From Macrostomum lignano (lineage: Eukaryota), in assembly GCA_002269645.1 (NCBI GenBank), contig NIVC01000586.1:1-64000 (forward strand): a stretch of DNA of 64,000 nucleotides, in the 5' to 3' direction. The notes beneath the pieces were generated by a model that was not told where the DNA came from, ran no database searches, and was given only the letters and a program-made list of their open reading frames with translations. Positions 3,115 through 45,917 of this stretch are shown piece after piece. Both the position numbers and the translations under genes were made by a program. Position 1 is the first letter of the stretch; the number at the start of each line of letters is the position of its first letter.

Positions 3115-4725
3115 TTCACTGAAAAGTCACTGACACACCCATAACATACGCTGACACATTCACTGACACACCCGTTAACACACACTGACACATTCACTGA
3201 CACACCCCATAACACACACAGACACATTCACTGACACACCCGTTAACACACACTGACACATTCACTGACACATTCACTGACACATTCACTGACACACCCC
3301 ATAACACACACTGACACATTCACTGACACATTCACTGACACACCCCATAACACACACTGACACATTCACTGACACATTCACTGACACACCCCATAACACA
3401 CACTGACACATTCACTGACACATTCACTGACACACCCCATAACACACACAAGCACATCCACTGACACACCCCATAACACACACAAGCACATTCACTGACA
3501 CGCCCCAAAATACACACTGAAACATTCACCGACACGCCGCATAACACACACTGACACATTCACTGACACGCACCTTAATACACTCTGACACGCCCCATAA
3601 CACACACTGACACATTCACTGACATGCCCCATAACACACACTGACACATTCACTGACACATTCACTGACACACCCCATAACACACACTGACACATTCACT
3701 GACACATTCACTGACACACCCCATAACACACACTGACACATTCACTGACACATTCACTGACACACCCCATAACACACACAAGCACATCCACTGACACACC
3801 CCATAACACACACAAGCACATTCACTGACACGCCCCAAAATACACACTGAAACATTCACCGACACGCCGCATAACACACACTGACACATTCACTGACACG
3901 CACCTTAATACACTCTGACACGCCCCATAACACACACTGACACATTCACTGACATGCCCCATAACACACACTGACACATTCACTGACACATTCACTGACA
4001 CACCCCATAACACACACTGACACATTCACTGACACATTCACTGACACACCCCATAACACACACTGACACATTCACTGACATGCCCCATAACACACACTGA
4101 CATGCCCCATAACACACACTGACACGCCCCATAACACACACTGACACGCCCATAACACACACTGACAGGCCCCATAACACACACTGACACGCCCATAACA
4201 CACACTGACACGCCCCCATAACACACACTGACACGCCTCATAACACACACTGACACGCCTCATAACACACACTGACACGCCTCATAACACACACTGACAC
4301 GCCTCATAACACACACTGACACGCCCATAACACACACTGACACACCCATAACACACACTGACACGCCCATAACACACACTGACACGCCCCATAACACACA
4401 CTGACACGCCCCCATAACACACACTGACACGCCCCATAACACACACTGACACGCCCCATAACACACACTGACACGCCCATAACACACACTGACAGGCCCC
4501 ATAACACACACTGACACGCCCATAACACACACTGACACGCCCCATAACACACACTGACACGCCCCATAACACACACTGACACGCCCCATAACACACACTG
4601 ACACGCCCCATAACACACACTGACACGCCTCATAACACACACTGACACGCCTCATAACACACACTGACACGCCCCCATAACACACACTGACACACCCATA
4701 ACACACACTGACACATTCACTGACG
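3115..4725. repeat. Minisatellite, 22-bp unit (acacactgacacgccccataac) mixed with a 12-bp subunit (acattcactgac)
   Basis: Directly visible. A 330-bp block is duplicated (identical track ORFs at 3332/3662 and 3492/3822). Confidence 0.95.
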
Positions 4726-5199: not shown

Positions 5200-5868
5200 T
5201 TATGCCGCTGCAGCAGCGGACAGGGCGGTCATCGAAGCCGACAAAGCGGATTCTGCAGCAGCAGCAGCTGCGTCCAGAGTTCTGGACATTCGCTCCAGAG
5301 GATTCACTGCGGCCGGCGTTGCCCCGTCGCAGTCCGGCATCCTGATCGCCGCCAGAAGGCCCCGGAGCAGCGGCACCGCACCAGCTGTCGTATTCTTCAT
5401 GAGGGCCGCGCGGAACTCTCTGAGCACGGCTACCAGGCAGGACTCGCTTTGAGCCGCAAAGCAGTAGTGCAGAGCGTTTCGGCCCCTGCTGTCGTACAGC
5501 CGAAACACCTGGCTGGGGTTTCGGCTGACCAGCTCGGCGACCAACCTCGACATTCCCGCCCACACGGCCAGCATCAGCAGCGACTCGAGTCCAGGACCTC
5601 GCCAGCGTTCCGTCAAAGTCCAGACGCCCAGATGGTCGCTTTGTCGAAGCGCTTCGATGGCCTCGTCCTCGCTGCCGCGCCCGATGGCGTCAGCAATCGG
5701 ATAACAGAGTCTGCGCTGCGACATCAGGGTGCGAATGGCGCGGCGGTGCTCGCTGACGAACTGCAGCCACTGGGACTCGGAGCACACCTGGCGCAGTTTC
5801 ATGACTCTTGCGGCGACGTCTCGCAGTTTATTTCTGTCGTCAGCTGATTTGCAGCTTCTTGGTGCCAT
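5200..5868 (-). CDS. Intronless ankyrin-repeat protein (~222 aa)
   Basis: ATG at 5868, TAA at 5200-5202. Ankyrin-like motifs ESLLMLAVWAGMSRLVAELV, DSRGRNALHYCF and DCDGATP. Confidence 0.65.
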   Translation of the reverse strand: MAPRSCKSADDRNKLRDVAARVMKLRQVCSESQWLQFVSEHRRAIRTLMSQRRLCYPIADAIGRGSEDEAIEALRQSDHLGVWTLTERWRGPGLESLLMLAVWAGMSRLVAELVSRNPSQVFRLYDSRGRNALHYCFAAQSESCLVAVLREFRAALMKNTTAGAVPLLRGLLAAIRMPDCDGATPAAVNPLERMSRTLDAAAAAAESALSASMTALSAAAAA

Positions 5869-6461
5869 GCTCAAATCGTTTCTTTGATATATGCGTCTGT
5901 GAGGCCTTCCTGAGGGTTGCTAGTTGCATTCCAGTCATGACTGAGCCGCTAATGCTTATATAGAGTTCTTCTAGACTGCCCTGCTTTGCCCGGGAATTCC
6001 GCGGGCGCGCTCGGGCACTCCAAACTAATAATCTGACGAACACTGCCAAATACGGTCTACGGGAGTTCCCTGCGTATTCTATTTTTAGACATTTCGCACT
6101 GGGGCGTGTTACGTGGCCAGTGTACGCCTCCAGTGCCACAAGCTTTTACTAAGGATGTCCACGTAGTGTCGTAGTCAGACAATTAAAAACTTTGTTTTGC
6201 CATGTTTGCGCTTCATCATTGCCCTCTTGCCCATGAAAAACACTTGCTAGTACGGACTGACACGGATGACAGATTTTATGAGAAACTAATTTCGATTTTA
6301 CGTAAATTGTTGTTGAAAAATAATAAGCTAGCATTTCCTGGAAAACTTAGACATTTTACTCGCCGTATTCTCACGATCTCATGGGTCATTTGTTCTGTAC
6401 GTTTAATTACTAACTGAAATCCGCTCACTATTTCAAAGCGTTAGTCCGTATACCTGCCTAT

Positions 6462-6579
6462 GTCGTCTGTCTGTCTTAGTGTCTGTCTTAGTGTCTGCCT
6501 GTCTGTCTGTCTTAGTGTCTGTCTGTCTGTCTGTCTTAGTGTCTGTCTGTCTTAGTGTCTGTCTGTCTGTCTGTCTGCG

Positions 6580-6650
<71 letters not shown>
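6462..6650. repeat. (GTCT)n microsatellite with TTAG interruptions; left flank of the TIR element
   Basis: Directly visible. Confidence 0.97.
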
Positions 6651-7935
6651 GTTAATGTCTGTGTGTTTACTTGGACCTTTCGTCAGTATTTTTCCCTCCT
6701 TACATGGACCACCCGTTTTAACTGGACCCCTTACGTGGACCACCATATATATTTCTACATGAAAGGTTAAAGATGTTTTACATAGACCTATGATGGAGTC
6801 TAGCAGAAAACGATCGTGGTCCCTAAAGTTGCTCACTCGAAGTTCTTTTGGTTCCAAGTTACAACGGTTTCAGTTTACCTGGACCTTTTACTCGGTCCAC
6901 CTAAACCGATTTTCGAGGTCCACGTAAATCGAAATTTCACATGACCCATTTTCAAAAACTGTCTGTTTGGTGTCTGTTTTGTGTCTGTTAGGTAAATTGG
7001 TAGCTAAATTTGTCGATTTGTTGTAATCGTGAAAACGTTGTTTTTTGCGATAAAATAACAAATTTGTAAGCAACAATATGTATAATGGATTTGGGGCTTG
7101 GACGACAAAGACGGAACTATTATATGCTATTAATTTCGAGACAATTTTTATAAAAAATCACGATATTGCATCACAGCATTGAGTCTCCTCTCCACCTTGA
7201 GCTACTAAAAATTCCTCTAAGATCGCAATTGTAAGTGATGCAACTGGCCACCCGTGCTGCAGGGAATGATGTATTTACACAATCACACACTATGAAGTAA
7301 TGATTGATAACAGGCTGTTTCGTACGAGCTATGTACGACCTGTATCTTATTATGTCAAAGCCAAAACGAAAGCCATATTTGTATCGCTATCTTTGAAAGT
7401 CGTAGCTTATCCTAACATTAAAGTGCCTTTAACCAAATTCATTGGACGGAAAATCCGGAGTACATCGTGTGATTGGACTGTAAGCCGCTCTTATACTTAA
7501 AGGAGCCTCACACTCCTTGAAAGATAGCGGCCTCCAGTGGTTCCCCTAAAACGATGTCCTGTAGCACAGACTAATCTCTACCCCCTTATTTTAGCATGAC
7601 TGCTTGTCTCATTGTACACAGCAATGTACACTAGTTGTTTGCTTTTTATTAAAACAGCTGATGTCGGGAGATAAGAATTCTAGAATTTTCTGTTTCAAGA
7701 CTGTACAGTGCGAATGGACACTGGCCAACCAGTGGGGTATCTCAATGGGCACTGTACATTTGCCAGCCACAGAATCTCGCTAACCAATAGGAAAAGGTCT
7801 AATGAAATTGGCGTGGGGTTGCTTGCTTATAGAAGCCTCGCAATCAGGTCCATTTAAACCCAGACTTACTAAGACCAGAGTTTATTTAGGCCCCGTTGCA
7901 ATTGCAACTGCAAGTATAGGAAGAATATCCTGTAG

Positions 7936-10900
7936 AAAACGGCCAAAATATTTTACGTCGAAAGGATTGAGAAGTGCTGCAAAAAGAAGTTTTTTATAAA
8001 GTGGACTGGCTATCCCAGGTAAGAAAATTTTCAAAAAAGAATAACTTCTAATTCTAAATAATATTTTACTTAACTTGTAAAAAATTTAAGGCTTTACTGC
8101 TTTTCATTTTTAACATGCTTTGTAGGAGTAAAAACACATGGGAGCCGAAAAAATATCCCCGAGAACATCCTAAACGCTCTGCACTCTGAGTGCGGTAAGC
8201 TATACTCTACAGTCAATATCAATAGCATACAATAGGACATTTGCATCAACAACTTATACAGTATTACATTATTTTATACATTTCAGGCAAGTGCTTCACT
8301 AGAACAAAAGCTAAGGACAAGTCAGTAAGTTTTGTTGTAACGTGTTATTAAAATTTTTGATTTTGCGCTTTACTTAAACTATGAACAAATATTGTGGACA
8401 CAATTCTCCTTTATGTTTTTCTTTGATTCGAAATTCCTATACAGCTACAAAATAATTAGCTTTACATGACCTAAACAGCTGAACTACTACAACCATTTCT
8501 TCTACGCTTCATACTCGTACTTCAAAGTAAACAAACAGTAATTGATTAGGGTCCAGCTAACACACCTTGTAAACAACAGACAGACACAGTTAAGATAGTG
8601 CCCCGATCTGGGGTCCAGCTAACACACCGTGACACCAACAGACAGATGCAGTCAGTTTAAGATGGTGCCCCGATCTGGGGTCCAGCTAACACACCGTGAC
8701 ACCAACAGACAGACGCAGTCAGTTTAAGATGGTGCCCAGATCTGGGGTCCAGCTAACACACCGTGACACCAACAGACAGACGCAGTCAGTTTAAGATGGT
8801 GCCCCGACCTGGGGTCCAGCTAACACACCGTGACACCAACAGACAGACGCAGTCAGTTTAAGATGGTGCCCCGACCTGGGGTCCAGCCAACACACCGTGA
8901 CACCAACAGACAGACGCAGTCAGTTTAAGATGGTGCCCAGATCTGGGGTCCAGCTAACACACCGTGACACCAACAGACAGACGCAGTCAGTTTAAGATGG
9001 TGCCCAGATCTGGGGTCCAGCTAACACACCGTGACACCAACAGACAGACGCAGTCAGTTTAAGATGGTGCCCAGATCTGGGGTCCAGCTAACACACCGTG
9101 ACACCAACAGACAGACGCAGTCAGTTTAAGATGGTGCCCAGATCTGGGGTCCAGCTAACACACCGTGACACCAACAGACAGACGCAGTCAGTTTAAGATG
9201 GTGCCCCGACCTGGGGTCCAGCTAACACACCGTGACACCAACAGACAGACGCAGTCAGTTTAAGATGGTGCCCAGATCTGGGGTCCAGCTAACACACCGT
9301 GACACCAACAGACAGACGCAGTCAGTTTAAGATGGTGCCCAGATCTGGGGTCCAGCTAACACACCGTGACACCAACAGACAGATGCAGTCAGTTTAAGAT
9401 GGTGCCCCGATCTGGGGTCCAGCTAACACACCGTGACACCAACAGACAGACGCAGTCAGTTTAAGATGGTGCCCCGACCTGGGGTCCAGCTAACACACCG
9501 TGACACCAACAGACAGACGCAGTCAGTTTAAGATGGTGCCCAGATCTGGGGTCCAGCTAACACACCGTGACACCAACAGACAGACGCAGTCAGTTTAAGA
9601 TGGTGCCCAGATCTGGGGTCCAGCTAACACACCGTGACACCAACAGACAGACGCAGTCAGTTTAAGATGGTGCCCCGACCTGGGGTCCAGCTAACACACC
9701 GTGACACCAACAGACAGACGCAGTCAGTTTAAGATGGTGCCCAGATCTGGGGTCCAGCTAACACACCGTGACACCAACAGACAGACGCAGTCAGTTTAAG
9801 ATGGTGCCCAGATCTGGGGTCCAGCTAACACACCGTGACACCAACAGACAGACGCAGTCAGTTTAAGATGGTGCCCCGACCTGGGGTCCAGCTAACACAC
9901 CGTGACACCAACAGACAGACGCAGTCAGTTTAAGATGGTGCCCCGACCTGGGGTCCAGCTAACACACCGTGACACCAACAGACAGACGCAGTCAGTTTAA
10001 GATGGTGCCCCGACCTGGGGTCCAGCTAACACACCGTGACACCAACAGACAGACGCAGTCAGTTTAAGATGGTGCCCCGATCTGGGGTCCAGCTAACACA
10101 CCGTGACACCAACAGACAGACGCAGTCAGTTTAAGATGGTGCCCCGATCTGGGGTCCAGCTAACACACCATGACGTGAGACTGAAAACTAGATACAGACA
10201 CTAAAAGTCTAGCCAACTTACAAAATATTAGTTTCCAATTAGAGCTTTCGTTTTAACGGAAGGAATTTTTAATATACACACCAAGCAGCAAGACTCAACC
10301 AGTCAGTCTTCTCAGCTGCAACAAGACTTGGCCAGTCAGCAGAAGCAGCAACAGAACCCGGCCACTCAGTCTCCTCAGCCGCATCAAGACACGGCCAGTC
10401 AGCAGAAGCCGCATCAAAACTCGGCCAGTCACTCTCCTCAGCTGCTGCAGAACTCGGCCAATAAGTCAAAGAAGCAACGTCGCTCGACCAGTCAGCAGAA
10501 GCCGCATCAAGACTCGGCCAGTCAGCAGAAGCCGCATCAAGACTCGGCCAGTCAGCAGAAGCGGCATCAAGACTCGGCCAGTTTTTCTCCAGAGCAGCAC
10601 GAATCGGCCAAGAGAGCTCGAAACAAGTCCAGATCGGTTAAGAGGAAAGGAAGCAAGCAGTCCCGATGTGAAAGTGCTGACTCGTGTGAAGCTGGCTCCT
10701 CTCATCAAGCCGCTGCTAAAGGCACCTCTTCTGCTGTAAGTACTTTGTTGCGCTGCACTTTTACGCCTTTGTTCAAAACTGCACTGCAACTCGCACAATT
10801 GAATCTTCTATTAGTGTTTGAATTTAAAGAAGACAGTCTTAGATTTTGCTCTTATCTAAGGTCCAGCTAACACACCGTGACACCAACAGACAGACGCAGT

Positions 10901-13900
10901 CAGTTTAAGATGGTGCCCCGACCTGGGGTCCAGCTAACACACCGTGACACCAACAGACAGACGCAGTCAGTTTAAGATGGTGCCCCGACCTGGGGTCCAG
11001 CTAACACACCGTGACACCAACAGACAGACGCAGTCAGTTTAAGATGGTGCCCAGATCTGGGGTCCAGCTAACACACCGTGACACCAACAGACAGACGCAG
11101 TCAGTTTAAGATGGTGCCCAGATCTGGGGTCCAGCTAACACACCGTGACACCAACAGACAGACGCAGTCAGTTTAAGATGGTGCCCCGACCTGGGGTCCA
11201 GCTAACACACCGTGACACCAACAGACAGACGCAGTCAGTTTAAGATGGTGCCCAGATCTGGGGTCCAGCTAACACACCGTGACACCAACAGACAGACGCA
11301 GTCAGTTTAAGATGGTGCCCAGATCTGGGGTCCAGCTAACACACCGTGACACCAACAGACAGACGCAGTCAGTTTAAGATGGTGCCCAGATCTGGGGTCC
11401 AGCTAACACACCGTGACACCAACAGACAGACGCAGTCAGTTTAAGATGGTGCCCCGACCTGGGGTCCAGCTAACACACCGTGACACCAACAGACAGACGC
11501 AGTCAGTTTAAGATGGTGCCCCGACCTGGGGTCCAGCTAACACACCGTGACACCAACAGACAGACGCAGTCAGTTTAAGATGGTGCCCCGACCTGGGGTC
11601 CAGCTAACACACCGTGACACCAACAGACAGACGCAGTCAGTTTAAGATGGTGCCCCGACCTGGGGTCCAGCTAACACACCGTGACACCAACAGACAGACG
11701 CAGTCAGTTTAAGATGGTGCCCCGATCTGGGGTCCAGCTAACACACCGTGACACCAACAGACAGACGCAGTCAGTTTAAGATGGTGCCCCGATCTGGGGT
11801 CCAGCTAACACACCATGACGTGAGACTGAAAACTAGATACAGACACTAAAAGTCTAGCCAACTTACAAAATATTAGTTTCCAATTAGAGCTTTCGTTTTA
11901 ACGGAAGGAATTTTTAATATACACACCAAGCAGCAAGACTCAACCAGTCAGTCTTCTCAGCTGCAACAAGACTTGGCCAGTCAGCAGAAGCAGCAACAGA
12001 ACCCGGCCACTCAGTCTCCTCAGCCGCATCAAGACACGGCCAGTCAGCAGAAGCCGCATCAAAACTCGGCCAGTCACTCTCCTCAGCTGCTGCAGAACTC
12101 GGCCAATAAGTCAAAGAAGCAACGTCGCTCGACCAGTCAGCAGAAGCCGCATCAAGACTCGGCCAGTCAGCAGAAGCCGCATCAAGACTCGGCCAGTCAG
12201 CAGAAGCGGCATCAAGACTCGGCCAGTTTTTCTCCAGAGCAGCACGAATCGGCCAAGAGAGCTCGAAACAAGTCCAGATCGGTTAAGAGGAAAGGAAGCA
12301 AGCAGTCCCGATGTGAAAGTGCTGACTCGTGTGAAGCTGGCTCCTCTCATCAAGCCGCTGCTAAAGGCACCTCTTCTGCTGTAAGTACTTTGTTGCGCTG
12401 CACTTTTACGCCTTTGTTCAAAACTGCACTGCAACTCGCACAATTGAATCTTCTATTAGTGTTTGAATTTAAAGAAGACAGTCTTAGATTTTGCTCTTAT
12501 CTAAGGTCCAGCTAACACACCGTGACACCAACAGACAGACGCAGTCAGTTTAAGATGGTGCCCCGACCTGGGTCCAGCTAACACACCGTGACACCAACAG
12601 ACAGACGCAGTCAGTTTAAGATGGTGCCCCGACCTGGGGTCCAGCTAACACACCGTGACACCAACAGACAGACGCAGTCAGTTTAAGATGGTGCCCAGAT
12701 CTGGGGTCCAGCTAACACACCGTGACACCAACAGACAGACGCAGTCAGTTTAAGATGGTGCCCAGATCTGGGGTCCAGCTAACACACCGTGACACCAACA
12801 GACAGACGCAGTCAGTTTAAGATGGTGCCCCGACCTGGGGTCCAGCTAACACACCGTGACACCAACAGACAGACGCAGTCAGTTTAAGATGGTGCCCAGA
12901 TCTGGGGTCCAGCTAACACACCGTGACACCAACAGACAGACGCAGTCAGTTTAAGATGGTGCCCAGATCTGGGGTCCAGCTAACACACCGTGACACCAAC
13001 AGACAGACGCAGTCAGTTTAAGATGGTGCCCAGATCTGGGTCCAGCTAACACACAGTGACACCAACAGACAGACGCAGTCAGTTTAAGATGGTGCCCCGA
13101 CCTGGGGTCCAGCTAACACACCGTGACACCAACAGACAGACGCAGTCAGTTTAAGATGGTGCCCCGACCTGGGGTCCAGCTAACACACCGTGACACCAAC
13201 AGACAGACGCAGTCAGTTTAAGATGGTGCCCCGACCTGGGGTCCAGCTAACACACCGTGACACCAACAGACAGACGCAGTCAGTTTAAGATGGTGCCCCG
13301 ACCTGGGGTCCAGCTAACACACCGTGACACCAACAGACAGACGCAGTCAGTTTAAGATGGTGCCCCGATCTGGGGTCCAGCTAACACACCGTGACACCAA
13401 CAGACAGACGCAGTCAGTTTAAGATGGTGCCCCGATCTGGGGTCCAGCTAACACACCATGACGTGAGACTGAAAACTAGATACAGACACTAAAAGTCTAG
13501 CCAACTTACAAAATATTAGTTTCCAATTAGAGCTTTCGTTTTAACGGAAGGAATTTTTAATATACACACCAAGCAGCAAGACTCAACCAGTCAGTCTTCT
13601 CAGCTGCAACAAGACTTGGCCAGTCAGCAGAAGCAGCAACAGAACCCGGCCACTCAGTCTCCTCAGCCGCATCAAGACACGGCCAGTCAGCAGAAGCCGC
13701 ATCAAAACTCGGCCAGTCACTCTCCTCAGCTGCTGCAGAACTCGGCCAATAAGTCAAAGAAGCAACGTCGCTCGACCAGTCAGCAGAAGCCGCATCAAGA
13801 CTCGGCCAGTCAGCAGAAGCCGCATCAAGACTCGGCCAGTCAGCAGAAGCGGCATCAAGACTCGGCCAGTTTTTCTCCAGAGCAGCACGAATCGGCCAAG

Positions 13901-15908
13901 AGAGCTCGAAACAAGTCCAGATCGGTTAAGAGGAAAGGAAGCAAGCAGTCCCGATGTGAAAGTGCTGACTCGTGTGAAGCTGGCTCCTCTCATCAAGCCG
14001 CTGCTAAAGGCACCTCTTCTGCTGTAAGTACTTTGTTGCGCTGCACTTTTACGCCTTTGTTCAAAACTGCACTGCAACTCGCACAATTGAATCTTCTATT
14101 AGTGTTTGAATTTAAAGAAGACAGTCTTAGATTTTGCTCTTATCTAAGGTCCAGCTAACACACCGTGACACCAACAGACAGACGCAGTCAGTTTAAGATG
14201 GTGCCCCGACCTGGGGTCCAGCTAACACACCGTGACACCAACAGACAGACGCAGTCAGTTTAAGATGGTGCCCAGATCTGGGGTCCAGCTAACACACCGT
14301 GACACCAACAGACAGACGCAGTCAGTTTAAGATGGTGCCCAGATCTGGGGTCCAGCTAACACACCGTGACACCAACAGACAGACGCAGTCAGTTTAAGAT
14401 GGTGCCCAGATCTGGGGTCCAGCTAACACACCGTGACACCAACAGACAGACGCAGTCAGTTTAAGATGGTGCCCCGACCTGGGGTCCAGCTAACACACCG
14501 TGACACCAACAGACAGACGCAGTCAGTTTAAGATGGTGCCCAGATCTGGGGTCCAGCTAACACACCGTGACACCAACAGACAGACGCAGTTAGTTTAAGA
14601 TGGTGCCCAGATCTGGGGTCCAGCTAACACACCGTGACACCAACAGACAGACGCAGTCAGTTTAAGATGGTGCCCAGATCTGGGGTCCAGCTAACACACC
14701 GTGACACCAACAGACAGACGCAGTCAGTTTAAGATGGTGCCCAGATCTGGGGTCCAGCTAACACACCGTGACACCAACAGACAGACGCAGTCAGTTTAAG
14801 ATGGTGCCCCGACCTGGGGTCCAGCTAACACACCGTGACACCAACAGACAGACGCAGTCAGTTTAAGATGGTGCCCTGATCTGGGGTCCAGCTTATAAGC
14901 TCTCATTCTCAGACTCTCTTAAGGTCCGATATTCCGCGAGTTCTGATTATCTCTTTTAAATAAATTGAAATGTAGTGCCTGTGAATAGTATAAGAATGTT
15001 TCCCTTTTGTTTTGCTTTATATGTTTTTAGTGGTACTTACATTTTAGGCAGTCGACAGCAGAAACGAGTTTTCAACGAATTGGTTCCAAGACAAAAAGTT
15101 TTTTTTCGCATATCCAAAGGCTTTTAACCGTGATCGGCTATGTGAAGAAGGCGTGTAGTATTTTGGTGGCACTATTGCTTCGTTTTTTTCAAATCAGGTA
15201 AGTGACTTTAGTATTTGTTGTTGTCGAAGTTAGTTTTGGTAGTAAACGTTGAGTTGTTTTTTAATTCTATTGTTGGTATCAATTTAAGTGAGCGCATTCG
15301 AGCGTATCTTTTAACGCTTCTTAATCCTAATGATAGAACAATTTGATTGCATTTTCCTGAACTTTATACAAAGCATTTTATGTAATTTAATTAATTTCAT
15401 AGGTGGACTTCGTCGTCTCAATTTCAACACCTGCGAACTGTTCGGAAATGTCCATTTCGAACATATTCGAACATACATATCGGCAACAGTGGAGTTGCCA
15501 CGGGGATGTGCGATGCAAAAAATGGCTACCGCAGCCAGTGCATACTCTGGCTTTTGCTCTGCCGATGACGATGTTGCAAAAACAAGGCTCCTCGGAATTC
15601 CAAATATCAGTCTACAAGGGGTTCGAGACTGTTTACGTGACCGCGGCTATATTGCAAGTCGAGCCGACTCAGCTAATGCGGCAGGATCATTTGCATTAAG
15701 TCACGGCAAAATCCTGTCTGGAACAGCAGTTGTTATTGGGGATGCAAGCCGACGGCGTGGACCAATTTTTTCTGAAAATCTACAAGTGTTCGACTATTTT
15801 ACTAATCCGGATTTATACGACCTTCGAGAATCCGAGGAGCAGGATCAACGAATCCGGCAAAAGATTTCAATGTTTTGTGTTTCTTTAAAATTGTTTCCTT
15901 TACGTTAA
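7936..15908 (+). pseudogene. Spliced, lesioned gene inside the TIR element: chromodomain, Q/S-rich exon (x3), Dbf4-like BRCT (motif N) and motif-M-like segment
   Basis: Exons 7936-8018 and 8126-8194 give IFYVERIEKCCKKKFFIKWTGYPRSKNTWEP (chromodomain; frameshift in the A6 run at 8148-8153). Further exons: 8287-8324; 10289-10735 with copies at 11934-12380 and 13577-14023; 15048-15197; 15403-15908. The last two give WFQDKKFFF...RLCEEGV*YFGGTIASFFSNQVDFVVS, then after a frameshift PRGCAMQKMA...AKTRLLGIPNIS and LSGTAVVIGDASRRRGPIF. Splice sites are canonical and phases consistent once the lesions are allowed. Confidence 0.6.
8550..14892. repeat. 67-bp tandem array (~60 copies) organised as a 1645/1643-bp higher-order repeat with three copies of a 690-bp insert
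   Basis: Unit ggggtccagctaacacaccgtgacaccaacagacagacgcagtcagtttaagatggtgccc(a/c)ga(t/c)ct. Inserts start at 10170, 11815 and 13458. Confidence 0.97.
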
Positions 15909-16231
15909 ATCGATTATTTCCAATTGCCTCCGTCTGTGTTTAACCTTAGCTGTCAGTGTTAGGTTTTCGCTAAATTTGGTCTATGATTTTGAATCGGTGT
16001 GGAGGTTCACCTAAAACACGTTCTGTCGGTGTCCATATAAACCAGTCCAGTTTAAGTAATAAAAATGCTGGTGCAGTTTCCACTAATGAGAGCCTCTGTC
16101 AGCTTCAAAAATAAACAAACTTTTGAAGATCTTTCGTGAACTAAAAAAAGGCTCTATTAAAAGTAAAAGAGTCGGTGGTCCATGTAATGCATTAAAACTT
16201 CTGAGGTCCAGCTAAACACACAGACACTTGT

Positions 16232-16435
<204 letters not shown>

Positions 16436-16570
16436 TTATCTGGAATCGTTGTGAGCTGGATATACCAGCCAGCATTTCGGGTCAGTCAAACTGTTTTGTG
16501 AGTCATATGATTTTGCCCTGTCTAATGAAACAGGTGTTGAGAAGCGGACAGACAATTTTACAGCAACTCC

Positions 16571-17376: not shown

Positions 17377-20300
17377 ATGGAGAGTTGGCTGCCCCTGCTG
17401 CTAGCTGCATTGGCCTCGGCTCCTCCCGTCAGCGAGTCAGTCGGCCAGCAGTTCTCGGTGACCGGCGGGCTGTGCAGCGCCACCGACGATCCGCTCGCGA
17501 CGCTTTCGGCGGCGGACAGTGGCGTCGAGTGCGCGGGAGAGTGCGCCGGAACTCCGGGCTGTCTCGCCTGCAGTGGAAACGGCAGCAGCTGGCGGCTGGT
17601 GCGCAACGCCTCAGTCGGGCTGACTTCCGGGAACTGCCGGATCGTGGCCAAGTCCAACATCCCAAATGGTGAGAGTTTAGCTGAAGCTCCTGGGCTCTAT
17701 CGTGTAAGTCCTCCCCCCCTGTCCACTTTCAGCAGGCGGTCTGATCACTCGAAAAGTTGCAGTCCGCAGTCAAAGTTTTGGACAATGACCAAGAATGTGA
17801 TTCTCACATTTGCGCCATGCAGCCTTGACCAATTTTTTTGTAAAAAGTGGTAGGAAAGTCTTGATTAAGCCATCAAAACATATGATTGCCTGCGATCACT
17901 ACGATCAGATCTCTGCGCCACAAACGAAACGCTCGAGGCGCCCTTCCTGGCTTTGAACTCGACCGGAGATGCGGTGCTTCTCATCGAACTGCTCTGCTCT
18001 CGCTGGTGCAGGCGTCTCGCGTCTGATGGCTCGCTGTTCGCCCCAATCGGCGCCGCTGTCAGCGCCACGCAGCCCGGAAAAGCCCTGATCCGCTGCTCGC
18101 CGCTAACGACCTCCGATTACTTCTCAAGTTCGACCGCTGACTTCTCTCTGCTCTCCGTGTCGGTCCGCTGGCGCGACCAGTTCACCAACGAGACCTTGTG
18201 CAGCAGCGCCGCGGCCAGCGGCAATGTCCCGCCTGCGGTCCACCTGGCCTGGTCTCAGCCTCATCGGCTGGACATCTGCGCCCAGGCTTGCGCTTGGCGT
18301 CCGACCTGCGAGTTCTTCGTTTTCAACGCCTCCGGCTGCTTTGAGGGCTCCCTCAGCCTCTACCTGAGCAGCCGTCTCCAGGGAATCCACGGCTGCAGCA
18401 TGTGGCACAAGACGCGCACCTGGGCCTCGTCTATGCTCGCCTTCTACGCCTTCAACTCAAGCATGCTGAACCTCGCCAGCCCGGCCATCATGCCGGCCTT
18501 GAACAACTCGCCGGTGGACATCGGGCCCGAGGGCGTCCTGATTCCGCTGAACACGGCGCAGTTCGTGCGGCTCAACCTGTCGCATATCGGCTTCGACTCG
18601 CTCGTCAGGTGAGCTTGAACTGGAGCTGCGATTTCTGAGTTCGACTTTTGTATTTCAAAGCAAGCAAACCCAGCAAACCCCAGCAAATTTGTTCAGATTA
18701 ATGCACAAATTTGGATTAATGCACTAGATTAATCAAGGATTATTGCTATTAATAAACCAAGGATTACTGCACTTGATTAATCAAGGATTATTGCTATTAA
18801 TAAACCAAGGATTACTGCACTTGGAAAACCAAGGATTACTGCACTCGAGAAGCCAAGGATTATTGCTATTAATAAACCAAGGATTACTGCACTCGATAGC
18901 CAAGGATTACTGCGCTTGATAAGCTTGGCTACATGTAAAGGATTATTTCTATCTAGGGATGCTTGCTATGTGCAGGATGCTTGCTATCTGGAAGGATGCT
19001 TCTACGTTATTTGGGGGATGCTTGCTATCTGGGTGGATGCTTTTATCCGGGGGATGTTTCTATTTGGGGGATGCTTGCTATCTGGGTGGATGCTTTTATC
19101 CGGGGGATGTTTCTATTTGGGGGATGCTTGCTATCTGGGTGGATGCTTTTATCCGGGGGATGTTTCTATTTGGGGGATGCTTGCTATCTGGGTGGATGCT
19201 TTTATCCGGGGATGTTTCTATTTGGGGGATGCTTGCTATCTGGGTGGATGCTTTTATCCGGGGGATGTTTCTATTTGGGGGATGCTTGCTATCTGGGTGG
19301 ATGCTTTTATCCGGGGATGTTTCTATTTGGGGGATGCTTGCTATCTGGGTGGATGCTTTTATCCGGGGGATGTTTCTATTTGGGGATGCTTGCTATCTGG
19401 GTGGATGCTTTTATCCGGGGGATGTTTCTATTTGGGGGATGCTTGCTATCTGGGTGGATGCTTTTATCCGGGGGATGTTTCTATTTGGGGGATGCTTGCT
19501 ATCTGGGTGGATGCTTTTATCCGGGGATGTTTCTATTTGGGGGATGCTTGCTATCTGGGTGGATGCTTTTATCCGGGGGATGTTTCTATTTGGGGATGCT
19601 TGCTATCTGGGTGGATGCTTTTATCCGGGGGATGTTTCTATTTGGGGGATGCTTGCTATCTGGGTGGATGCTTTTATCCGGGGGATGCTTCTATTTGGGG
19701 GATGCTTGCTATCTGCAGATGCTTGCTATCTGGGTGGATGCTTGCTAGGAGTATTAGGGGATGCTTGCTATTTGCGGTTGTTTACTTTTGGAGGAGGGTG
19801 CTTGCTACTGGGGGATGCTTGCTGTCTTGGGAATATTTTCTATTTAGGGGTAATGACTGTGATCTTTGTGAAAGCTATATTTTCCTGTCTGTTTGTTAAT
19901 TTTAGAAAAAAAGAGATTCATAGCAAATATTATTGTCCATGACAATTTTAAATGAATAAGGTGATTTTTAAAAGTGATGAAGGACTTGGTTTTTAAGAAA
20001 ATGTGCTTTTTCATTGATTTCCATAAACTATTTTTGCTTCGTTCTTATTAGGCGCCCCGAAGGGGGGCCGCACTAGATTGCTAGTTGTCTTTTCTAAAAC
20101 TTTGTCTCGACAAACGTTAACCTTGAGTAATGAGGAAGTTCAAATCGCAAGTATTTATATGTCTTCAGTAGAAGTCGGGAACCCATTGCTAAATTTATTT
20201 CAGGGCCAACACCTCGTTCACCTTCGTGATCACGTTTAGTCGAGGCCTGCCAAAAAGCCGCTCCGAGCTGGTCCTGTTTTCCAGCTGCTCAGACATCACT

Positions 20301-20672
20301 CAATACAACGGCGCCATCAACGAGCAGTCCTCGAGGAACGAGGGCTGGTTCCTGAACTCCCTCACAGGCCATTGGCAAGTCGCCAAGTCCCTCAGCCCGG
20401 GTTCAACCATGGACTATCCCAACAGCTCAGCGATTCACCTGGCCATGGCTCTGGGCCCGACATCCGGCTACTTCGTGGTGAACGGAGTGAAGCTGGACAC
20501 GAACTTCTACACGGCTCCCAGCACCTACGGCACCGACCCGGTTAAGATTGGCTGCATGTTCCTGGGCATGATGTACTTCAACCCCCCGAGCAGGATTCTG
20601 CATGGCAGAATCAGGAATCTGGCCATCTTCACTAAGATGCTGTCCGTCGAAGAGGTCATGGAGTTGGTGTGA
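17377..20672 (+). CDS. Secreted protein with PAN/Apple-like Cys motifs and a C-terminal LamG/concanavalin-A-like (pentraxin-like) domain
   Basis: Exons 17377-17668, 17909-18608 and 20204-20672 (phases 1, 2). Signal peptide MESWLPLLLAALASA. PAN-like motifs VECAGECAGTPGC and ICAQACAWRPTCEFFVF. LamG_3-type ending HLAMAL...FVVNG...LHGRIRNLAIFTKMLSVEEV. AATAAA at ~20758. Confidence 0.8.
18955..19760. repeat. 53-bp intronic minisatellite built from three ~18-bp GGATG-initiated subunits
   Basis: Period 53 (19021 to 19074), with occasional 52-bp copies. Preceded by degenerate ccaaggattactgcact repeats at ~18720-18920. Confidence 0.95.
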
Positions 20673-21904
20673 CCCAAGGCTGACTTGAGGACAAAGCAAC
20701 GCTGTGATGAGCGAAAAGCAGTGAATAATACAAACTGAAAATGAAATTATTTCTCCGGAATAAATGTTTTTAATTATCGGCGCAGAATTGCTGGCATTCG
20801 AGCAGATTGTTTCCCGGATTTCCTGATTTTGTCATTTTTGTTTACGGATAGGCAAAAGCTATCAGAAAGGGCAGCAAGAACTGCTCACCCGGACTCCGCT
20901 TAGCCAATAAAAGGCACAGGTGGAAGCAGAGCTGAAATTTGATATTTAGGACTACAGTATAACATTATAGTATTATGCTTTTGCGCCCTCAAATTTCAAC
21001 ATTGATTACTTAGCCAAATTCTATAGTGATAAGAGTGTCATTAACTTAATCAGAGACAATGTTCGGGACTGGCTGGGTTTTGAGCAAGGAATGTCTATGG
21101 TCAAGTCTGTTTTATATTCGCTGATGGGTCGAGTTGAGTCAAATGATCTGCTTACTGACTTCCCGAGACTGCTGAGCTCAAGCAATCTGTCTAACCAAAT
21201 GGTCTCGGGCTTATCAACAGAATTAGAGTTGGAGTTGGTTACTTTTGAATCAGCAATTGTTTCTTATGTACTCTACGTTCGTTCAATGCTTGTTTACAAA
21301 AGTGCAACTCCTTCATTGAACTGAACACAGATTGATGTTCAGTTGACTATAATCTAATGGACCATAGACTATGGAACGTTTGAGATTCAATGATTTCAAT
21401 GAGCTCAAAAAATCAATAGCAGTCTATGGCCGAAATACTAACTTTCTTGTCCTTTTCGTCTGTGTCTATGTCTTGTTGGCAAAACCAAATCTACGACACG
21501 AGATTACCAAATCTACCAAATTTAATGCCAAAAATCGCGTACTGCTGCCAAATGAGAATTCTCAACTTAGTTGGCTTAACCACCAACTTGGCCCAGGAGT
21601 CAGCCTCCTGCTACTTCGGGTGTTCAATTTTCAATGTTGCTTAGTCTTGCCGTGTTGACTGTATACTGAATCAAAGCGCTCGCAGTCTTGTGGCCATAGA
21701 CAATATTTGAGGGCCCGATGCTATCTTTGGCTATCTTATCTTGTTTTTCAAACTTCGTTTTCACACGCCTCGGGCCATAGACAAAAGAGATTGGCGGGCT
21801 ATCAGCACAGGGAGACAGACGACTTGAAGAGTGCGAGCCAAATGCCACCCTGAATGTCAACTGCTATCTTGCTAAGCTACGTTAAATAATTTCAAAAAAT
21901 AAGA

Positions 21905-24900
21905 ATGAATATTCGCCTGCATTCAATGACTCTGCTAATTCTGCTCGTGGCTGTCTGTTGGCCTCACCAAGCCTTCGGGGCGTATCGCTGCTTGAACAAA
22001 AATGCAACACTGTATCGAAGCGCCCTCTACGCTCGACCGTCGAAATATGAGCTTCGTCTGAATGACAACGAATGTATGGCCAGTGTGGTGCTGGGCGATT
22101 GGTGCCACTGGGAGCCCGTGGACACTGGCCACGGAGTCACCACCTGCCAGAAGGGCCTTAACATTCGATGGCGAAGACGTCAATGCAACTGCCCGCCACC
22201 GAAGCCGCTGTACAGTCACAAGACTTGGTGCATGCCGCCCTGGAACACCAGCTCGGTTGCCACGCTTCTCAATGCCACCTTGACACGACTGGAGGCGCTG
22301 AAGCCCGCCGTCTGGAACGATGCCAAGCTGTGGCGCCTCAATCGGCCTTTCAGTCGGCCAGGATCCCTGACCAACTCGCTACTGGCCTGCATGCGGATGG
22401 ATGTGAGCTCATCCATGGACTGCTAATCTAGCCTATGGGATTGCTAATCTAGCCCATGGGATTGCTAATCTAGCCTATGGGATTGCTAATCTAGCCTATG
22501 GGATTGCTAATCTAGCCTATGGTATTGCTAATTTAGCCTATGGGATTGCTGGATTGCTAATCTAGCCTATGGGATTGCTAATCTAGCCTATGGGATTGCT
22601 GGATTGCTAATCTAGCCTATGGGATTGCTAATCTAGCCTACGGGATTGCTGGATTGCTAATCTAGCCTATGGGATTGCTAATCTAGCCTATGGGATTGCT
22701 GGATTGCTAATCAAGCCTATGAGATTGCTAGTCTAGCCAATGGGATTGCTAATCTAGCCTATGGGATTGCTAATCTAGCCTATGGGATTGCTAATCTAGC
22801 CTATGGTATTGCTAATTTAGCCTATGGGATTGCTGGATTGCTAATCTAGCCTATGGGATTGCTAATCTAGCCTATGGGATTGCTAATCTAGCCTATGGGA
22901 TTGCTAATCTAGCCTATAGGAAGACTCATTAGAGGAATGCTAATCCATATCACCCAAATCCCGTTGCCAAGCCAGGATTCGGACTGCTTCTTCCACACTG
23001 GGGCAATGTACACGGGCACTGTTCACCACGTCCGGAGTGGCAAGCCGTGCCTGCATTGGTCCTCGTTCCAGACTGAGCTGGTCAGCATGGGGCTGACCAA
23101 GTCTAAGTTAAGGCTTTTTCTGGCCACCAATCCGCGGAATTATTGTAGAAACCCGCTGTCAGAGCTGGAGCACACAATGTTCGCTAACTCCCGCCTGAAG
23201 CCGTGGTGCTTTGTGAACAAAATTTCTTATGAAATGCGTATGCTGTGGGACTATTGCGAGATCAAACGCTGCGGCTCTTCGCACTACCACGGCATCGTGG
23301 TCTTTGACCCGAACAGATTTAACCACATCCGGTTCAGAGGGATGACCAAGTCCACGACTCACTCGCCCACCAACACCATTAACCCGGATCCTTCTGGAGA
23401 CATGAATGCCGAGGCCTGCTTTGAGACCTGCCGATTCCGCTGTGAAAAGTTTGCCCGTGAGTCTGCTCAGATGCTGTTTAGATATTGTTTCGATGTCACA
23501 TAGACGTCGCTCAGATGCTGTTTAGATGTCGCTCAGATGCTGTTTAGATGTCGCTCAGATGCTGTTTAGATGTCGCTCAGATGCTGTTTAGATGTCGCTC
23601 AGATGCTGTTTAGATGTCGCTCAGATGCTGTTTAGATGTCGCTCAGATGCTGTTTAGATATTGTCTCAATGTCACATAGACGTCGCTTAGCTGCTTTTTA
23701 GATGTCGCTCAGATGCTGTTTAGATATTGTTTCGATGTCACATAGACGTCGCTTAGCTGCTGTTTAGATGTCGCTCAGATGCTGTTTAGATATTGTTTCG
23801 ATGTCACATAGACGTCGCTTAGCTGCTGTTTAGATGTCGCTCAGATGCTGTTTTAAGATGAGAGAGGTTATTGACTTGAGCAGTAAGCTCAGCTGGCAAG
23901 CTTCCAGAAAGGAAGGCAGCGTCTGTCTTATGCAGCTGCCGTCTCTTCAATGTGTTGACCAGTCATCCGCTCCGCACTCCCACCGCAGTGATGAATTTAC
24001 GCAGGCACACTCCGCCACTCCCACCGCAGTGATGAATTTACGCAGGTACACTCCGCACTCCCACCGCAGTGATGAGTTTACGCAGGCACACTCCGCCACT
24101 CCCACCGCAGTGATGAATTTACGCAGGCACACTCCGCCACTCTCACCGCAGTGATGAGTTTACGCAGGCACACTCCGCCACTCCCACCGCAGTGATGAAT
24201 TTACGCAGGCACACTCCGCACTCCCACCGCAGTGATGAATTTACGCAGGCACACTCCGCACTCCCACCGCAGTGATGAATTTACGCAGGCACACTCCCAC
24301 TCGCAACCTGCGGGCCTGCCAGTGCTTCAACGAGTCGGAGATTCCGGACCCAGCCGCCGACTTCAAGGGCCGCTACATCGACAACTTGCCGGTAATGTTC
24401 GATCACAGGGTCTACCTGTATTACAATATATACTTCAAGTATCATCAATCGGATGGTCCATTTCGATACCTTAAATGGGAGCCGTGCCTTTTGTTCGACA
24501 CCATGTTTCGCTGCCCTCTCGTGAACATAGATGGCGCGCCAGAACTATTTACCACCGTCTTCGAGATCGCATTGCCCAAGAACTGCTATGAAGCCAACAG
24601 AATGATCCACTGGGAACAGCTCGACACCATGACAATCTTTGGCGCGATGGGAAACTTTCGGTAAGATGGAGGGGAATATAGAATGCACGACCTTGAGACA
24701 GGAGCGAATCCAGAGTTGGACAGAAGTTAATCCGACAGAACGTTTGACCTTGGGAAATATGGGGAATCCGACAAAATGTTTGACCTTGAAAAATATGGTG
24801 AATCCAACAGAATGTTTGACCTTAAGAAATACGGGGAATCCAACAGAATTTTCGACCTTGAGAAATATGGGGAATCCAACAGAATGTTCGACTTGAGAAA

Positions 24901-27900
24901 TATGGGGAATCCAACAGAATGTTCGACCTTGAGAAATATGGTGAATCCAACAGAATGTTTGACCTTAAGAAATACGGGGAATCCAACAGAATTTTCGACC
25001 TTGAGAAATATGGGGAATCCAACAGAATGTTTGACCTTGGGAAATATGGGGAATCCGACAAAATGTTTGACCTTGAAAAATATGGGGAATCCAACAGAAT
25101 GTTTGACCTTAAGAAATACGGGGAATCCAACAGAATTTTCGACCTTGAGAAATATGGGGAATCCAACAGAATGTTTGACCTTGAAAAATATGGGGAATCC
25201 AACAGAATGTTCGACTTGAGAAATATGGGGAATCCAACAGAATGTTCGACCTTGAGAAATATGGGTAATCCAACAAAATGTTTGAACTTGAGAAATATGG
25301 GGAATCCGACAGAACGTTCGACCTTGAAAAATATGGGGAATCCAATAAATGCACGACCTTGAGACAGGGGAATCCAGGGCGCACCGCATTTGCTAAGTTG
25401 GAGTGATAAATTTTCAACCTGTGAGCAGCTAACCAGGCAGCAACCATTTGCTCACTCAACCACTGGCAGGCAAGTGGCGTCAATAAACCAGGTCACCAGC
25501 AAAGTGCTGATGTCCAGCAGGAATTCGCACTCCAGGTTTCTCAACACGCTGTGCACTCATCAAACTACCGCTTTTACGTATTGCCCCCCCTTCGAGGCCG
25601 AATCATTGCTTGACCCGAATTCCTACTTCAATAACGTTGTTGACGAGGATTTTCAGTGGATTATCTTCGACATTGGCAGCCACAAGCACATCTCCCTGCT
25701 CAAGCTCTTCATCAATCGAATGGATTTGAGCGCCATGCGCTTCTTGGAGGTTTTCGTTCGCGGCGCTCCGCTGCCACACTGGCTGGTGGAGACCGACTTC
25801 CGCAGCAGCGACGGCGAGAAGGGACGGCGAACCGAATACTTCAGGAGGGCCACCATGGCCGAAAAAATGCTCTGGTGGCACTGCGAGGATCTCAAATTTC
25901 ATCACGGTGTGGTGAGATATCACAGGGGCTTGGATTAGTGAGTGAGGATTCGTGAGTGACTTCTTGAGTGACTTCATGAGAGAGCTCATGAGTGAGTTCA
26001 TGAGTGAGTTCATGAGTGAGTTCATGAGTGAGTTCATGAGTGAGTTCATGAGTGAGTTCATGAGTGAATTCATGAGTGAGTTTATGAGTGAGTTCATGAG
26101 TGAGGGTTAATGAGTGAGTTCATGAGTGAGGGTTAATGAGTGAGTTCATGAGTGAGCTCATGAGTGAGTTCATGAGTGAGGGTTCATGAGTGAGGGTTCA
26201 TGAGTGAGTTCATGAGTGAGCTCATGAGTGAGTTCATGAGTGAATTCATGAGTGAGTTTATGAGTGAGTTCATGAGTGAGGGTTAATGAGTGAGTTCATG
26301 AGTGAGTTCATGAGTGACTTCATGAGTGAGTTCATGAGTGACTTCATGAGTGAGTTCATGAGTGACTTCATGAGTGAGTTCATGAGTGACTTCATGAGTG
26401 AGTTCATGAGTGACTTCATGAGTGACTTCATGAGTGACTTCATGAGTGAGTTCAGGAGTGACTTCATGAGTGAGTTCATGAGTGAGTTCATGAGTGACTT
26501 CATGAGTGAGTTCTTGAGTGAGTTCATGAGTGAGTTCTTGAGCGGAGTGAGGGTTTATGAGTGAGATCATGAGTGAGTTCCTGAGTCAGTTCATGAGTGA
26601 GGGTTTATGAGTGAATTCATGAGTGAGTTAATGAGTGAGGTCATGAGTGAGTTCATGAGTGAGTTCATGAGTGAGGGTTCATGAGTGAGTTCCTGAGTCA
26701 GTTCATGAGTGAGGGTTCATGAGTGAATTCATGAGTGAGTTAATGAGTGAGGTCATGAGTGAGGTCATGAGTGAGTTCTTGGGTCAGTTCCTGAGTCAGT
26801 TCATGAGTGAGGATTTATGAGTGGATTCATGAGTGAGTTCATGAGTGAGGGTTCATGAGTGAGTTCATGAGTGACTTCATGAGTGAGTTCATGAGTGATT
26901 TCGTGAGTGAGTTCTTGAGTGAGTTCTTGAGTGAGTTCATGAGTGGGGGTTTAAGAGTGAGTTCATGAGTGAGTTCTTGAGTAGAGTGAGGGTTTATGAG
27001 TGAGATCATGAGTGAGATCATGAGTGAGATCATGAGTGAGTTCATGAGTGAGTTCATGAGTGAGTTCATGAGTGAGTTCATGAGTGAGTTCATGAGTGAG
27101 ATCATGAGTGAGTTCATGAGTGAGATCATGAGTGAGATCATGAGTGAGATCATGAGTGAGATCATGAGTGAGATCATGAGTGAGTTCATGAGTGAGTTCA
27201 TGAGTGAGTTCATGAGTGAGTTCATGAGTGAGTTCATGAGTGAGATCATGAGTGAGTTCATGAGTGAGATCATGAGTGAGTTCATGAGTGAGATCATGAG
27301 TGAGATCATGAGTGAGATCATGAGTGAGATCATGAGTGAGTTCATGAGTGAGATCATGAGTGAGTTCATGAGTGAGTTCATGAGTGAGTTCATGAGTGAG
27401 TTCATGAGTGAGTTCATGAGTGAGATCATGAGTGAGATCATGAGTGAGTTCATGAGTGAGTTCATGAGTGAGTTCATGAGTGAGATCATGAGTGAGATCA
27501 TGAGTGAGTTCATGAGTGAGTTCATGAGTGACCGAGGGCCCCGCGCCGCCTCCTCCCGCAGTCGTACATCTATTCCGAGTGCTGTCCCCACCAGCGCACT
27601 CGCTGGGTGATGATCCGAATGAAGGTCAACTCTGATTTGCTGGAGATGAAGTACATGATGGGCTTCGACTGGCTAAAGTTCCCCGAAATTAGCCGCATCT
27701 TAGTGACGAATCTGCAAGTATTCGAAACCTCGCTGGACATGATGAACTGCCTGACCATGCACCACCCTCCCATGGGCCCAGAGAACGCCGACTACTGGGA
27801 GGATTTGTACAGCTTTGACGGAAGTGTGAGCAGAGTGCCATCACTCCACAAGTTATAGAATTTTCACTCCATAAATGTCACTCGGCAACTGTCAGTCCGA

Positions 27901-30513: not shown

Positions 30514-36189
<5,676 letters not shown>

Positions 36190-41480: not shown

Positions 41481-41829
<349 letters not shown>

Positions 41830-44800: not shown

Positions 44801-45259
44801 TCAGCCATATGATCCACATCCTCGCAGGTCTCAATCGGACGTAAGTCCGTGAGTTCCTGCAGGTGCAGATCAAGGGCAGCCTTGTAGGCCGCCCAATCAG
44901 TGTTGCGGATATTGCGTCTCCAAGTGATCGGAGACTGGGTTTTAGTGTCCGCGATGTTAAAGGCGATAAAGCAGTGGTCAGACAGGGAGGGCTCCTCAGA
45001 CCAGACTCTCCACTCCTCAACTCTGTCAAAGAGTCTTGGGGTAACGAGTGTGGCGTCGAGGACCTCGGTCCATCTGCCATTATTAAAGGTAGGAGTGCTG
45101 CCGCGGTTGCAGAGCATGAGGTTTGTGTTAGAGATGAGGGCCAGAAGCTCCTCTCCTCTAGTGTTGGTATCTTTGCTGCCCCAGTGCTTGTGGTGCGCGT
45201 TGAGGTCGCCCCCTAAGCACAGCTCAGCGTTCTGGGACTCGCAGTATTGCGCGAGGCCC
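41830..45259 (-). mobile_element. 5'-truncated non-LTR retrotransposon (partial AP endonuclease, RT, RNase H), LOA/Lian-like
   Basis: APE C-terminal motifs GGDLNAHHKHWGS, TPTF and SLSDHCFI. RT motifs KSPGPDG, FRPISLTS, FLDIVGAFD, GGPQGGVLTP and YADD. After a frameshift at ~42975 the RNase H reads CYTDGS...VFQNEVLAI...SDSQAAL...WVPGHVGIRGNELAD. Stop at 41919; ~90-bp 3' UTR. Confidence 0.93.

Positions 45260-45917
<658 letters not shown>

Follow-up and report, generated by a model that had tools for sequence, protein, structure and literature searches.

Two groups of DNA elements frame the comparison made here. Ginger elements have TGTNR...YNACA ends and terminal repeats of 40-270 bp, produce a 4-bp duplication at CCGG/CCGT (Ginger1) or within RTATAY (Ginger2), and encode a Gypsy-integrase-like transposase if autonomous (PMC2836005). 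Helentron-associated interspersed elements (HINEs) possess subterminal inverted repeats of 11-15 bp, a GTCY-type microsatellite, and a palindrome downstream of the 3' repeat, and many of them carry gene fragments; their central tandem repeats may reach half of the element, and their asymmetric ends, with T-runs at the boundaries, insert within TT without duplication (PMC4067079, PMC7492417). We analyzed a 64,000-nucleotide stretch of the flatworm Macrostomum lignano (assembly GCA_002269645.1, contig NIVC01000586.1, positions 1 to 64,000; hereafter the window), in which the original prediction had placed a large non-autonomous or decayed DNA element at 6656-16226, with allusions to both groups. 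On balance, and with confidence only a little above even, we read this segment as a decayed, non-autonomous inverted-repeat DNA element of the cut-and-paste type that lies in a (TGTC)n microsatellite and contains both a fragment captured from a host gene and a satellite from its own ends. The predicted class is thus retained, on the grounds of an inverted-repeat-bounded unit, mirrored motif arrays, and the lack of a transposase, while the Ginger and DINE-1/Helentron labels are dropped. The segment is most likely an ordinary genomic relic of unassigned superfamily.

The two boundaries of the segment mirror each other. The 23-bp terminal inverted repeats described in the original prediction were recovered, with 21 of the 23 positions of the left repeat matching the reverse complement of the right one, as was the second inverted pair farther in, which is perfect over 14 bp. 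In an ends-versus-ends comparison, weaker similarity ran to 58 bp (6656-6713 versus 16226-16174; 76%, E 3.8e-7). The similarity stops at that point, as would be expected if the boundaries were the paired ends of a single element and not duplicates of a small element. We also detected two (TGTC)n arrays, missed earlier, which lie outside the inverted repeats, one on each side and on the same strand (Table 1). This arrangement is the picture expected for an insertion into one microsatellite, and not that expected for a symmetric element owning its terminal microsatellites. Across 131 kb of M. lignano DNA, no further (TGTC)n array was present. A HINE model with the microsatellite placed within the element was rejected, as a comparison of 6300-6460 with the right side gave no inverted repeat; no outer repeat lies beyond the microsatellites. 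The flanks read ...CTGTGTTAA on the left and CTTGTATGTC... on the right (...GTGTTAA and CTTGTAT... next to the element), giving the junctions TTAA/TGTC and GACA/CTTG.

Straight after the right (TGTC)n array, the sequence TGTTTATCTGGA at 16433-16444 weakly resembles (8/10) the left terminal motif in direct orientation; a small palindrome, GCTGGATATACCAGC, comes next (16455-16469). The look-alike could be a chance resemblance or the stump of a neighboring copy.

The mirrored clusters of a 12-bp motif are the strongest clue to the nature of the element, and their pattern is that of the protein-binding site arrays near the ends of the Ac/Ds, En/Spm, and P transposons. The motif GGTCCANNTAA has 75 exact copies in the window, against 0.39 expected, all of them within 6667-16215. 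The 12-mer GGTCCANNTAAA, with at most one mismatch, gave 78 matches (3.1 expected in the window) and none outside the segment. No copy was found in the remaining 54 kb of the window or in three control M. lignano loci (67 kb). All ten motif positions listed in the original prediction are exact, and the two variants it reported, at 16004 and 16030, are each one base off. It lacked an additional one-mismatch copy at 6777, and it missed the link between the motif and a 67-bp minisatellite, whose four arrays contain 65 of the 75 copies.

Thirteen copies lie outside these arrays. On the left, six of them point one way and three the other, while the four on the right run inward-to-outward, and the orientations of the two clusters are mirrored. 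The clusters extend about 270 bp from the left end and about 220 bp from the right end. All nine specified bases are kept in 10 of the 13 copies, a figure that is partly circular because the copies were found with the motif itself. The enrichment of the motif and the variability of its NN positions, which differ from copy to copy in the left cluster and take nine different dinucleotides overall, are free of that circularity. These copies are irregularly spaced, at 13-97 bp instead of 67 bp, and their spacers show no relation to the 67-bp unit. The variable NN positions, the irregular spacing, and the unrelated spacers together make the copies look like binding sites rather than decayed satellite units. 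Additionally, 6874-6885 and 6894-6905 in the left cluster constitute a hairpin-capable inverted repeat (DNA fold z = -2.1), and a 10-bp palindrome, TAATGCATTA at 16185-16194, overlaps the copy at 16177 in the right cluster.

Six-frame Pfam searches of all three unique parts yielded no match even at E<=1, in agreement with the reported lack of a transposase; the lack of one in any frame fits a non-autonomous or decayed DNA element. The earlier estimate of about 3.9 kb for the non-repetitive core was also borne out (1893 + 685 + 1333 = 3911 bp). This core had been considered anonymous, but it holds a truncated, intron-bearing Dbf4-like pseudogene. A word-indexed homology search with the 192-aa open reading frame (ORF) at 15330-15908 gave no match, and only an exhaustive HMMER search revealed its Dbf4-like relatives in M. 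lignano, PAA77783.1 (Mlig017237g1) and A0A1I8JFC0. The former carries zf-DBF (Pfam E 4e-12); the Dbf4/ASK family is characterized by a BRCT-like motif N, a motif M, and a DBF zinc finger at the C terminus, in collinear order. By tblastn, a BRCT-like motif N at 15066-15200 and a motif M are collinear with both proteins. The end of the exon bearing motif N coincides with the exact first-intron position of the intact Mlig017237g1 (FFSKQ/GT, contig NIVC01000723.1). The following exon starts in phase, but motif M lies in another frame, indicating a frameshift between them. No DBF zinc finger was detected downstream of motif M or elsewhere in the window; AATAAA signals are located at 16058 and 16110. 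Farther upstream, the ORF through a Gln/Ser-rich stretch has 10328 as the start of the reading frame only, with no acceptor site identified, and its identical copies in the other 685-bp spacers end at 12380 and 14023. Judged from its sequence, the interior is a 3'-truncated pseudogene, copied at the DNA level with its introns, that belongs to a Dbf4-like family with at least two other members in M. lignano. For annotation, the Dbf4-like reading frames in the segment count as a pseudogene and not as a gene.

Exact-protein look-ups with five ORFs of the window (15330-15908, 10328-10870, the reverse transcriptase and kringle ORFs, and 5200-5868) found none of them on record, and a search of PDB sequences for Dbf4 structures, with PAA77783.1 or a three-sequence profile, returned nothing significant. 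The intact Mlig017237 is present on three contigs of GCA_002269645.1 (NIVC01000723.1, NIVC01000948.1, and NIVC01000889.1), in each case with a ferlin gene upstream and Ariadne downstream, an example of how loci occur in three homeologous copies in this assembly. The first intron of the gene holds a minisatellite of ~29 bp; in the segment, the introns and surroundings of the gene copy are filled by the 67-bp minisatellite. Neither the motif nor (TGTC)n was present at the three intact loci, which also lacked any similarity to the segment.

The 67-bp minisatellite forms four arrays (8549-10174, 10860-11819, 12505-13462, and 14148-14893) with a total of 4.3 kb. The units begin with (TCTGG)GGTCCAGCTAACACACCGTGACAC, which is identical at 24 of 29 positions to the right terminus, TCTGAGGTCCAGCTAAACACACAGACAC; the reverse complement of the unit also aligns to the left terminus plus the beginning of its flanking microsatellite. 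All 65 motif copies in the arrays share one orientation and are located in the body of the element. The 1.6-kb interior block was triplicated recently. Each 1,645-bp unit consists of a 685-bp spacer and a 67-bp array, of which the last is shorter, and the three spacers (10175-10859, 11820-12504, and 13463-14147) are identical. As a candidate foldback hairpin, the 67-bp unit folded no better than its shuffles, and its pattern was unmatched in prokaryotic genome contigs and viral contigs.

In the mechanism we propose, the element would have inserted into a pre-existing (TGTC)n array, and the motif copies would represent putative sites at which a transposase provided in trans was bound. The Dbf4-like fragment may have been captured in the manner of Pack-type elements taking host genes, and the 67-bp satellite may have grown out of terminal or junction sequence. 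The present copy is probably immobile. Truncated and mutated host genes that retain their introns are the usual cargo of gene-capturing DNA transposons. This Pack-type feature is present between the terminal repeats, where the host gene fragment has introns, a stop codon, and a frameshift, and lacks zf-DBF.

Table 1. Coordinates of the features of the segment at 6656-16226 and its flanks (TRF, Tandem Repeats Finder)
Feature	Position	Strand	Details
Left flanking (TGTC)n microsatellite	6461-6650	+	degenerate, 82% matches (TRF)
Left terminal inverted repeat, TGTCTGTGTGTTTACTTGGACCT	6656-6678	+	imperfect similarity to right end up to 6713
Left subterminal motif cluster, GGTCCANNTAAA	6666-6928	both	6 copies on - (6666, 6699, 6717, 6730, 6777 with one mismatch, 6874), 2 on + (6894, 6917)
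Left arm of 14-bp perfect pair, TTACATGGACCACC	6700-6713	+	44 bp from left end
Degenerate GTCT-like internal repeat, (TGTCTGTTTGG)x3	6960-6993	+	TRF
Lone motif copy, GGTCCATTTAAA	7847-7858	+	left unique region
67-bp minisatellite	8549-10174	+	24.3 units (TRF)
Higher-order unit, 1,645 bp	10175-14893	+	~2.9 copies, 99.3-99.8% identical
ORF through Gln/Ser-rich stretch (30-bp repeats)	10328-10735	+	phase-0 end at GTAAGT donor, in frame with the exon of motif N
Dbf4-like exon, BRCT-like motif N	15048-15197	+	in-frame TAG at 15156-15158; ends FFSNQ/GTAAGT
Dbf4-like exon 2	15403-15908	+	starts VDFVVS in frame 0; motif M 15492-15863 in frame 2
Right subterminal motif cluster	16004-16216	+	4 copies: 16004, 16030 (one mismatch each), 16177, 16205
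Right arm of 14-bp perfect pair, GGTGGTCCATGTAA	16174-16187	+	39 bp from right end
Right terminal inverted repeat, AGGTCCAGCTAAACACACAGACA	16204-16226	+
Right flanking (TGTC)n microsatellite	16229-16435	+	51.8 units, 99% pure (TRF)

Several observations weigh against a transposon origin. No target-site duplication was visible, as no direct repeat of 2-10 bp appeared at any boundary offset tried; mutation of the microsatellite may have hidden one. The terminus is unlike that of any known superfamily, and part of the terminal match is of low complexity because the outer 11 bases of the repeat (TGTCTGTGTGT) resemble the microsatellite. Neither the ends nor the body recurred elsewhere in the window or in a further 67 kb of M. 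lignano DNA. The 67-bp unit is homologous to the termini, and either may have given rise to the other. Furthermore, 15% of the M. lignano genome consists of simple and tandem repeats (PMC5730564), in keeping with which the window alone has more than 30 minisatellite arrays (TRF); with such extreme minisatellite richness, complex local repeats can form without transposition. The same richness, together with the single copy seen, favors an account with no mobile element, in which a Dbf4-like duplicate decays locally around an intronic 67-bp minisatellite, the motifs are scattered and partly inverted satellite relics, and the inverted ends arose from local inversion or duplication. The 67-bp unit and both termini are indeed similar over about 25-45 bp, intronic minisatellites are normal in M. 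lignano (one lies in the corresponding intron of the intact paralogue), and the block was rearranged recently by tandem triplication. We nevertheless consider this account unlikely. Beyond the arrays, only the 12-bp motif is conserved, at irregular spacing and with spacers unrelated to the 67-bp unit; the clusters are oriented as mirror images of each other across the segment; and the collinear 23-bp and 14-bp inverted matches fall exactly at edges that the same microsatellite abuts. A separation into two small elements from a single family, which would have entered in opposite orientation to the left and right of an unrelated pseudogene, is very improbable. The left cluster, 6656-6928, has both motif orientations followed by a GTCT-like repeat and could stand alone, and (TGTC)n adjoins each cluster, but two copies of such an element would be expected to align from end to end, whereas the two sides share only the 58 bp and the dispersed 12-bp motif.

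Rolling-circle transposition offers another explanation, in which the segment is a HINE or DINE-1-like element with the 14-bp pair as its subterminal inverted repeats, the 67-bp arrays as its central repeats, and the GTCT repeats as its GTCY microsatellite. The perfect 14-bp pair is within the size range of HINE subterminal repeats and lies 44 bp and 39 bp from the ends, the central tandem repeats are large, and a gene fragment is present. The palindrome TAATGCATTA overlaps the 3' repeat and ends 32 bp from 16226 (8-35 bp for the HINE stem-loop), although the fold of 16140-16228 was no better than that of shuffles. Inside the left flank, the GTCY-type repeat is represented only by the degenerate (TGTCTGTTTGG)x3 at 6960-6993, which follows the inverted motif pair 6874/6894. 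That pair is the only close inverted one and lies 170 bp further in; a complementary repeat within about 1-22 bp of the 5' subterminal repeat is absent, and the copies beside the 5' 14-mer (6717 and 6730) are direct, not complementary. In addition, the long (TGTC)n arrays flank the repeats externally, with no outer repeat past them. The outermost 23 bp are themselves inverted repeats, which makes the ends symmetric, and the junctions display neither a TT target nor T-runs. The central repeats begin only after 1.9 kb, compared with the 10-500 bp reported for HINEs. We therefore set aside the DINE-1/Helentron label of the original prediction, chiefly in view of the external (TGTC)n, the missing complementary repeat, and the symmetric ends, and regard a HINE identity as quite improbable.

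We return to the preferred reading of a decayed cut-and-paste element, whose broader form is more speculative. It is doubtful, in our estimate, that the segment represents one copy of an undescribed flatworm DNA transposon family, possibly a new lineage, which would combine GGTCCANNTAAA arrays for recognition, (TGTC)n-specific integration, host gene capture, and minisatellite seeding. If it did, such a family would be one source of the unusual tandem-repeat load of M. lignano. If mobility were shown, the element would provide a curated non-autonomous DNA element for the poorly classified repeat library of this regeneration and transgenesis model, a concrete flatworm example of a DNA transposon that captured a host gene, and an instance of a minisatellite born from transposon ends.

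A scan of metagenomes with the terminal-repeat pattern returned seven contigs. One viral contig (L004, the same as L008) was rejected as a chance match. The other six are JGI (Joint Genome Institute) contigs with a GC content of about 40%: five (L001-L003, L006, and L007) represent the same eukaryotic locus in different samples, and one (L005) is a short tandem repeat in which the module is part of a duplicated unit of roughly 167 bp at the end of the contig. The eukaryotic contigs contain a GTCT-like (GTCT/TCTC) microsatellite and then TGTGTGTTTAGNTGGACC / TGTGTGTTTAGNTGGACCG, without the opposite terminal end; L006 includes a GTCY-like stretch at 3430-3460 (GTCTGTCGTCCGTCTGT). We treat these matches as compatible with chance because 11 of the 20 specified bases are microsatellite-like. 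The module is either a chance match or a repeat module shared with other invertebrates.

Within the window, the segment sits between a weakly ankyrin-like ORF (5200-5874, -) and the start of a signal-peptide/PAN/Laminin-G-like/kringle gene (17377-23503, +), which point away from each other; a TRAF-MATH ORF (2028-2615, +) lies farther upstream. With its TRAF-MATH, kringle, and PAN domains and a non-LTR (long terminal repeat) retrotransposon, the window is animal DNA. A chimeric query of the two flanking genes for homeologous loci found no match, probably as low-complexity runs of alanine filled the list of candidates. Neither Rfam nor tRNA scans gave a match in the window. The retrotransposon, which is defective and 5'-truncated, occupies 41481-45917 (-), with an endonuclease plus reverse transcriptase region (42865-45261), an RNase H region (41919-42614), and a frame break between them. 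It has (AACT)n on both sides in the same orientation (41481-41829 and 45260-45917) and is thus, like the segment, an insert that sits in a tetranucleotide array. In blocks, its ORF shows 98-100% identity with an M. lignano protein in UniRef, and its 3' end (41828-41909) recurs at 85.5% identity in contig NIVC01000889.1 (21702-21779). Minisatellites are distributed over 3127-60726 (e.g., 47070-52912, 53556-55741, and 25939-27531), including a 23-bp unit x254 (GC skew about 0.78), a 21-bp unit x100, and a 12-bp unit x131. C2H2 zinc-finger exons were located at 33533-33850 and about 35956, in an ORF that runs into a 30-bp minisatellite at 33885-34562; we take their finger region to resemble closely that of GFI1/senseless.

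Compared with Ginger1 and Ginger2, the segment shares ends that begin with TGT and finish with ACA (PMC2836005). However, its terminus reads TGTCT, with T as the fifth base, as opposed to TGTNR...YNACA, and the Ginger affinity suggested in the original prediction does not hold. The 4-bp flanks, TTAA and CTTG, form no duplication, the target is neither CCGG/CCGT nor RTATAY, the good terminal match covers 23 bp against about 40-270 bp, and neither an integrase nor any other Pfam domain was found.

The segment resembles Ac/Ds (hAT), En/Spm-CACTA, P/Galileo, and Pack-MULE-like elements in its short inverted termini, motif copies in both orientations no more than a few hundred bp from each end, lack of a transposase, and gene-fragment interior. 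Its terminus, TGTCTGTG..., fits none of the CACTA, YARNG, CATG, and GRG signatures of those superfamilies, and it differs from them in having no visible target-site duplication. Tetris is a foldback transposon of Drosophila virilis that is reported to have seeded a satellite, and the likeness consists of tandem repeats within a DNA element built from its own terminal-repeat sequence; here, in contrast, the array copies run in the same direction and lie in the body rather than in long inverted arms (PMC4079207). MuTAnT elements are Mutator-like elements reported to target TA microsatellites, and share with this locus a DNA element embedded in a microsatellite, with an identical repeat on either side (PMC4486113). 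They differ in superfamily signature and in target, which is a tetranucleotide here, with targeting suggested by a single copy. The nearest functional analogues are subterminal-repeat DNA transposons with gene fragments, and the satellite seeding seen in Tetris-like elements.

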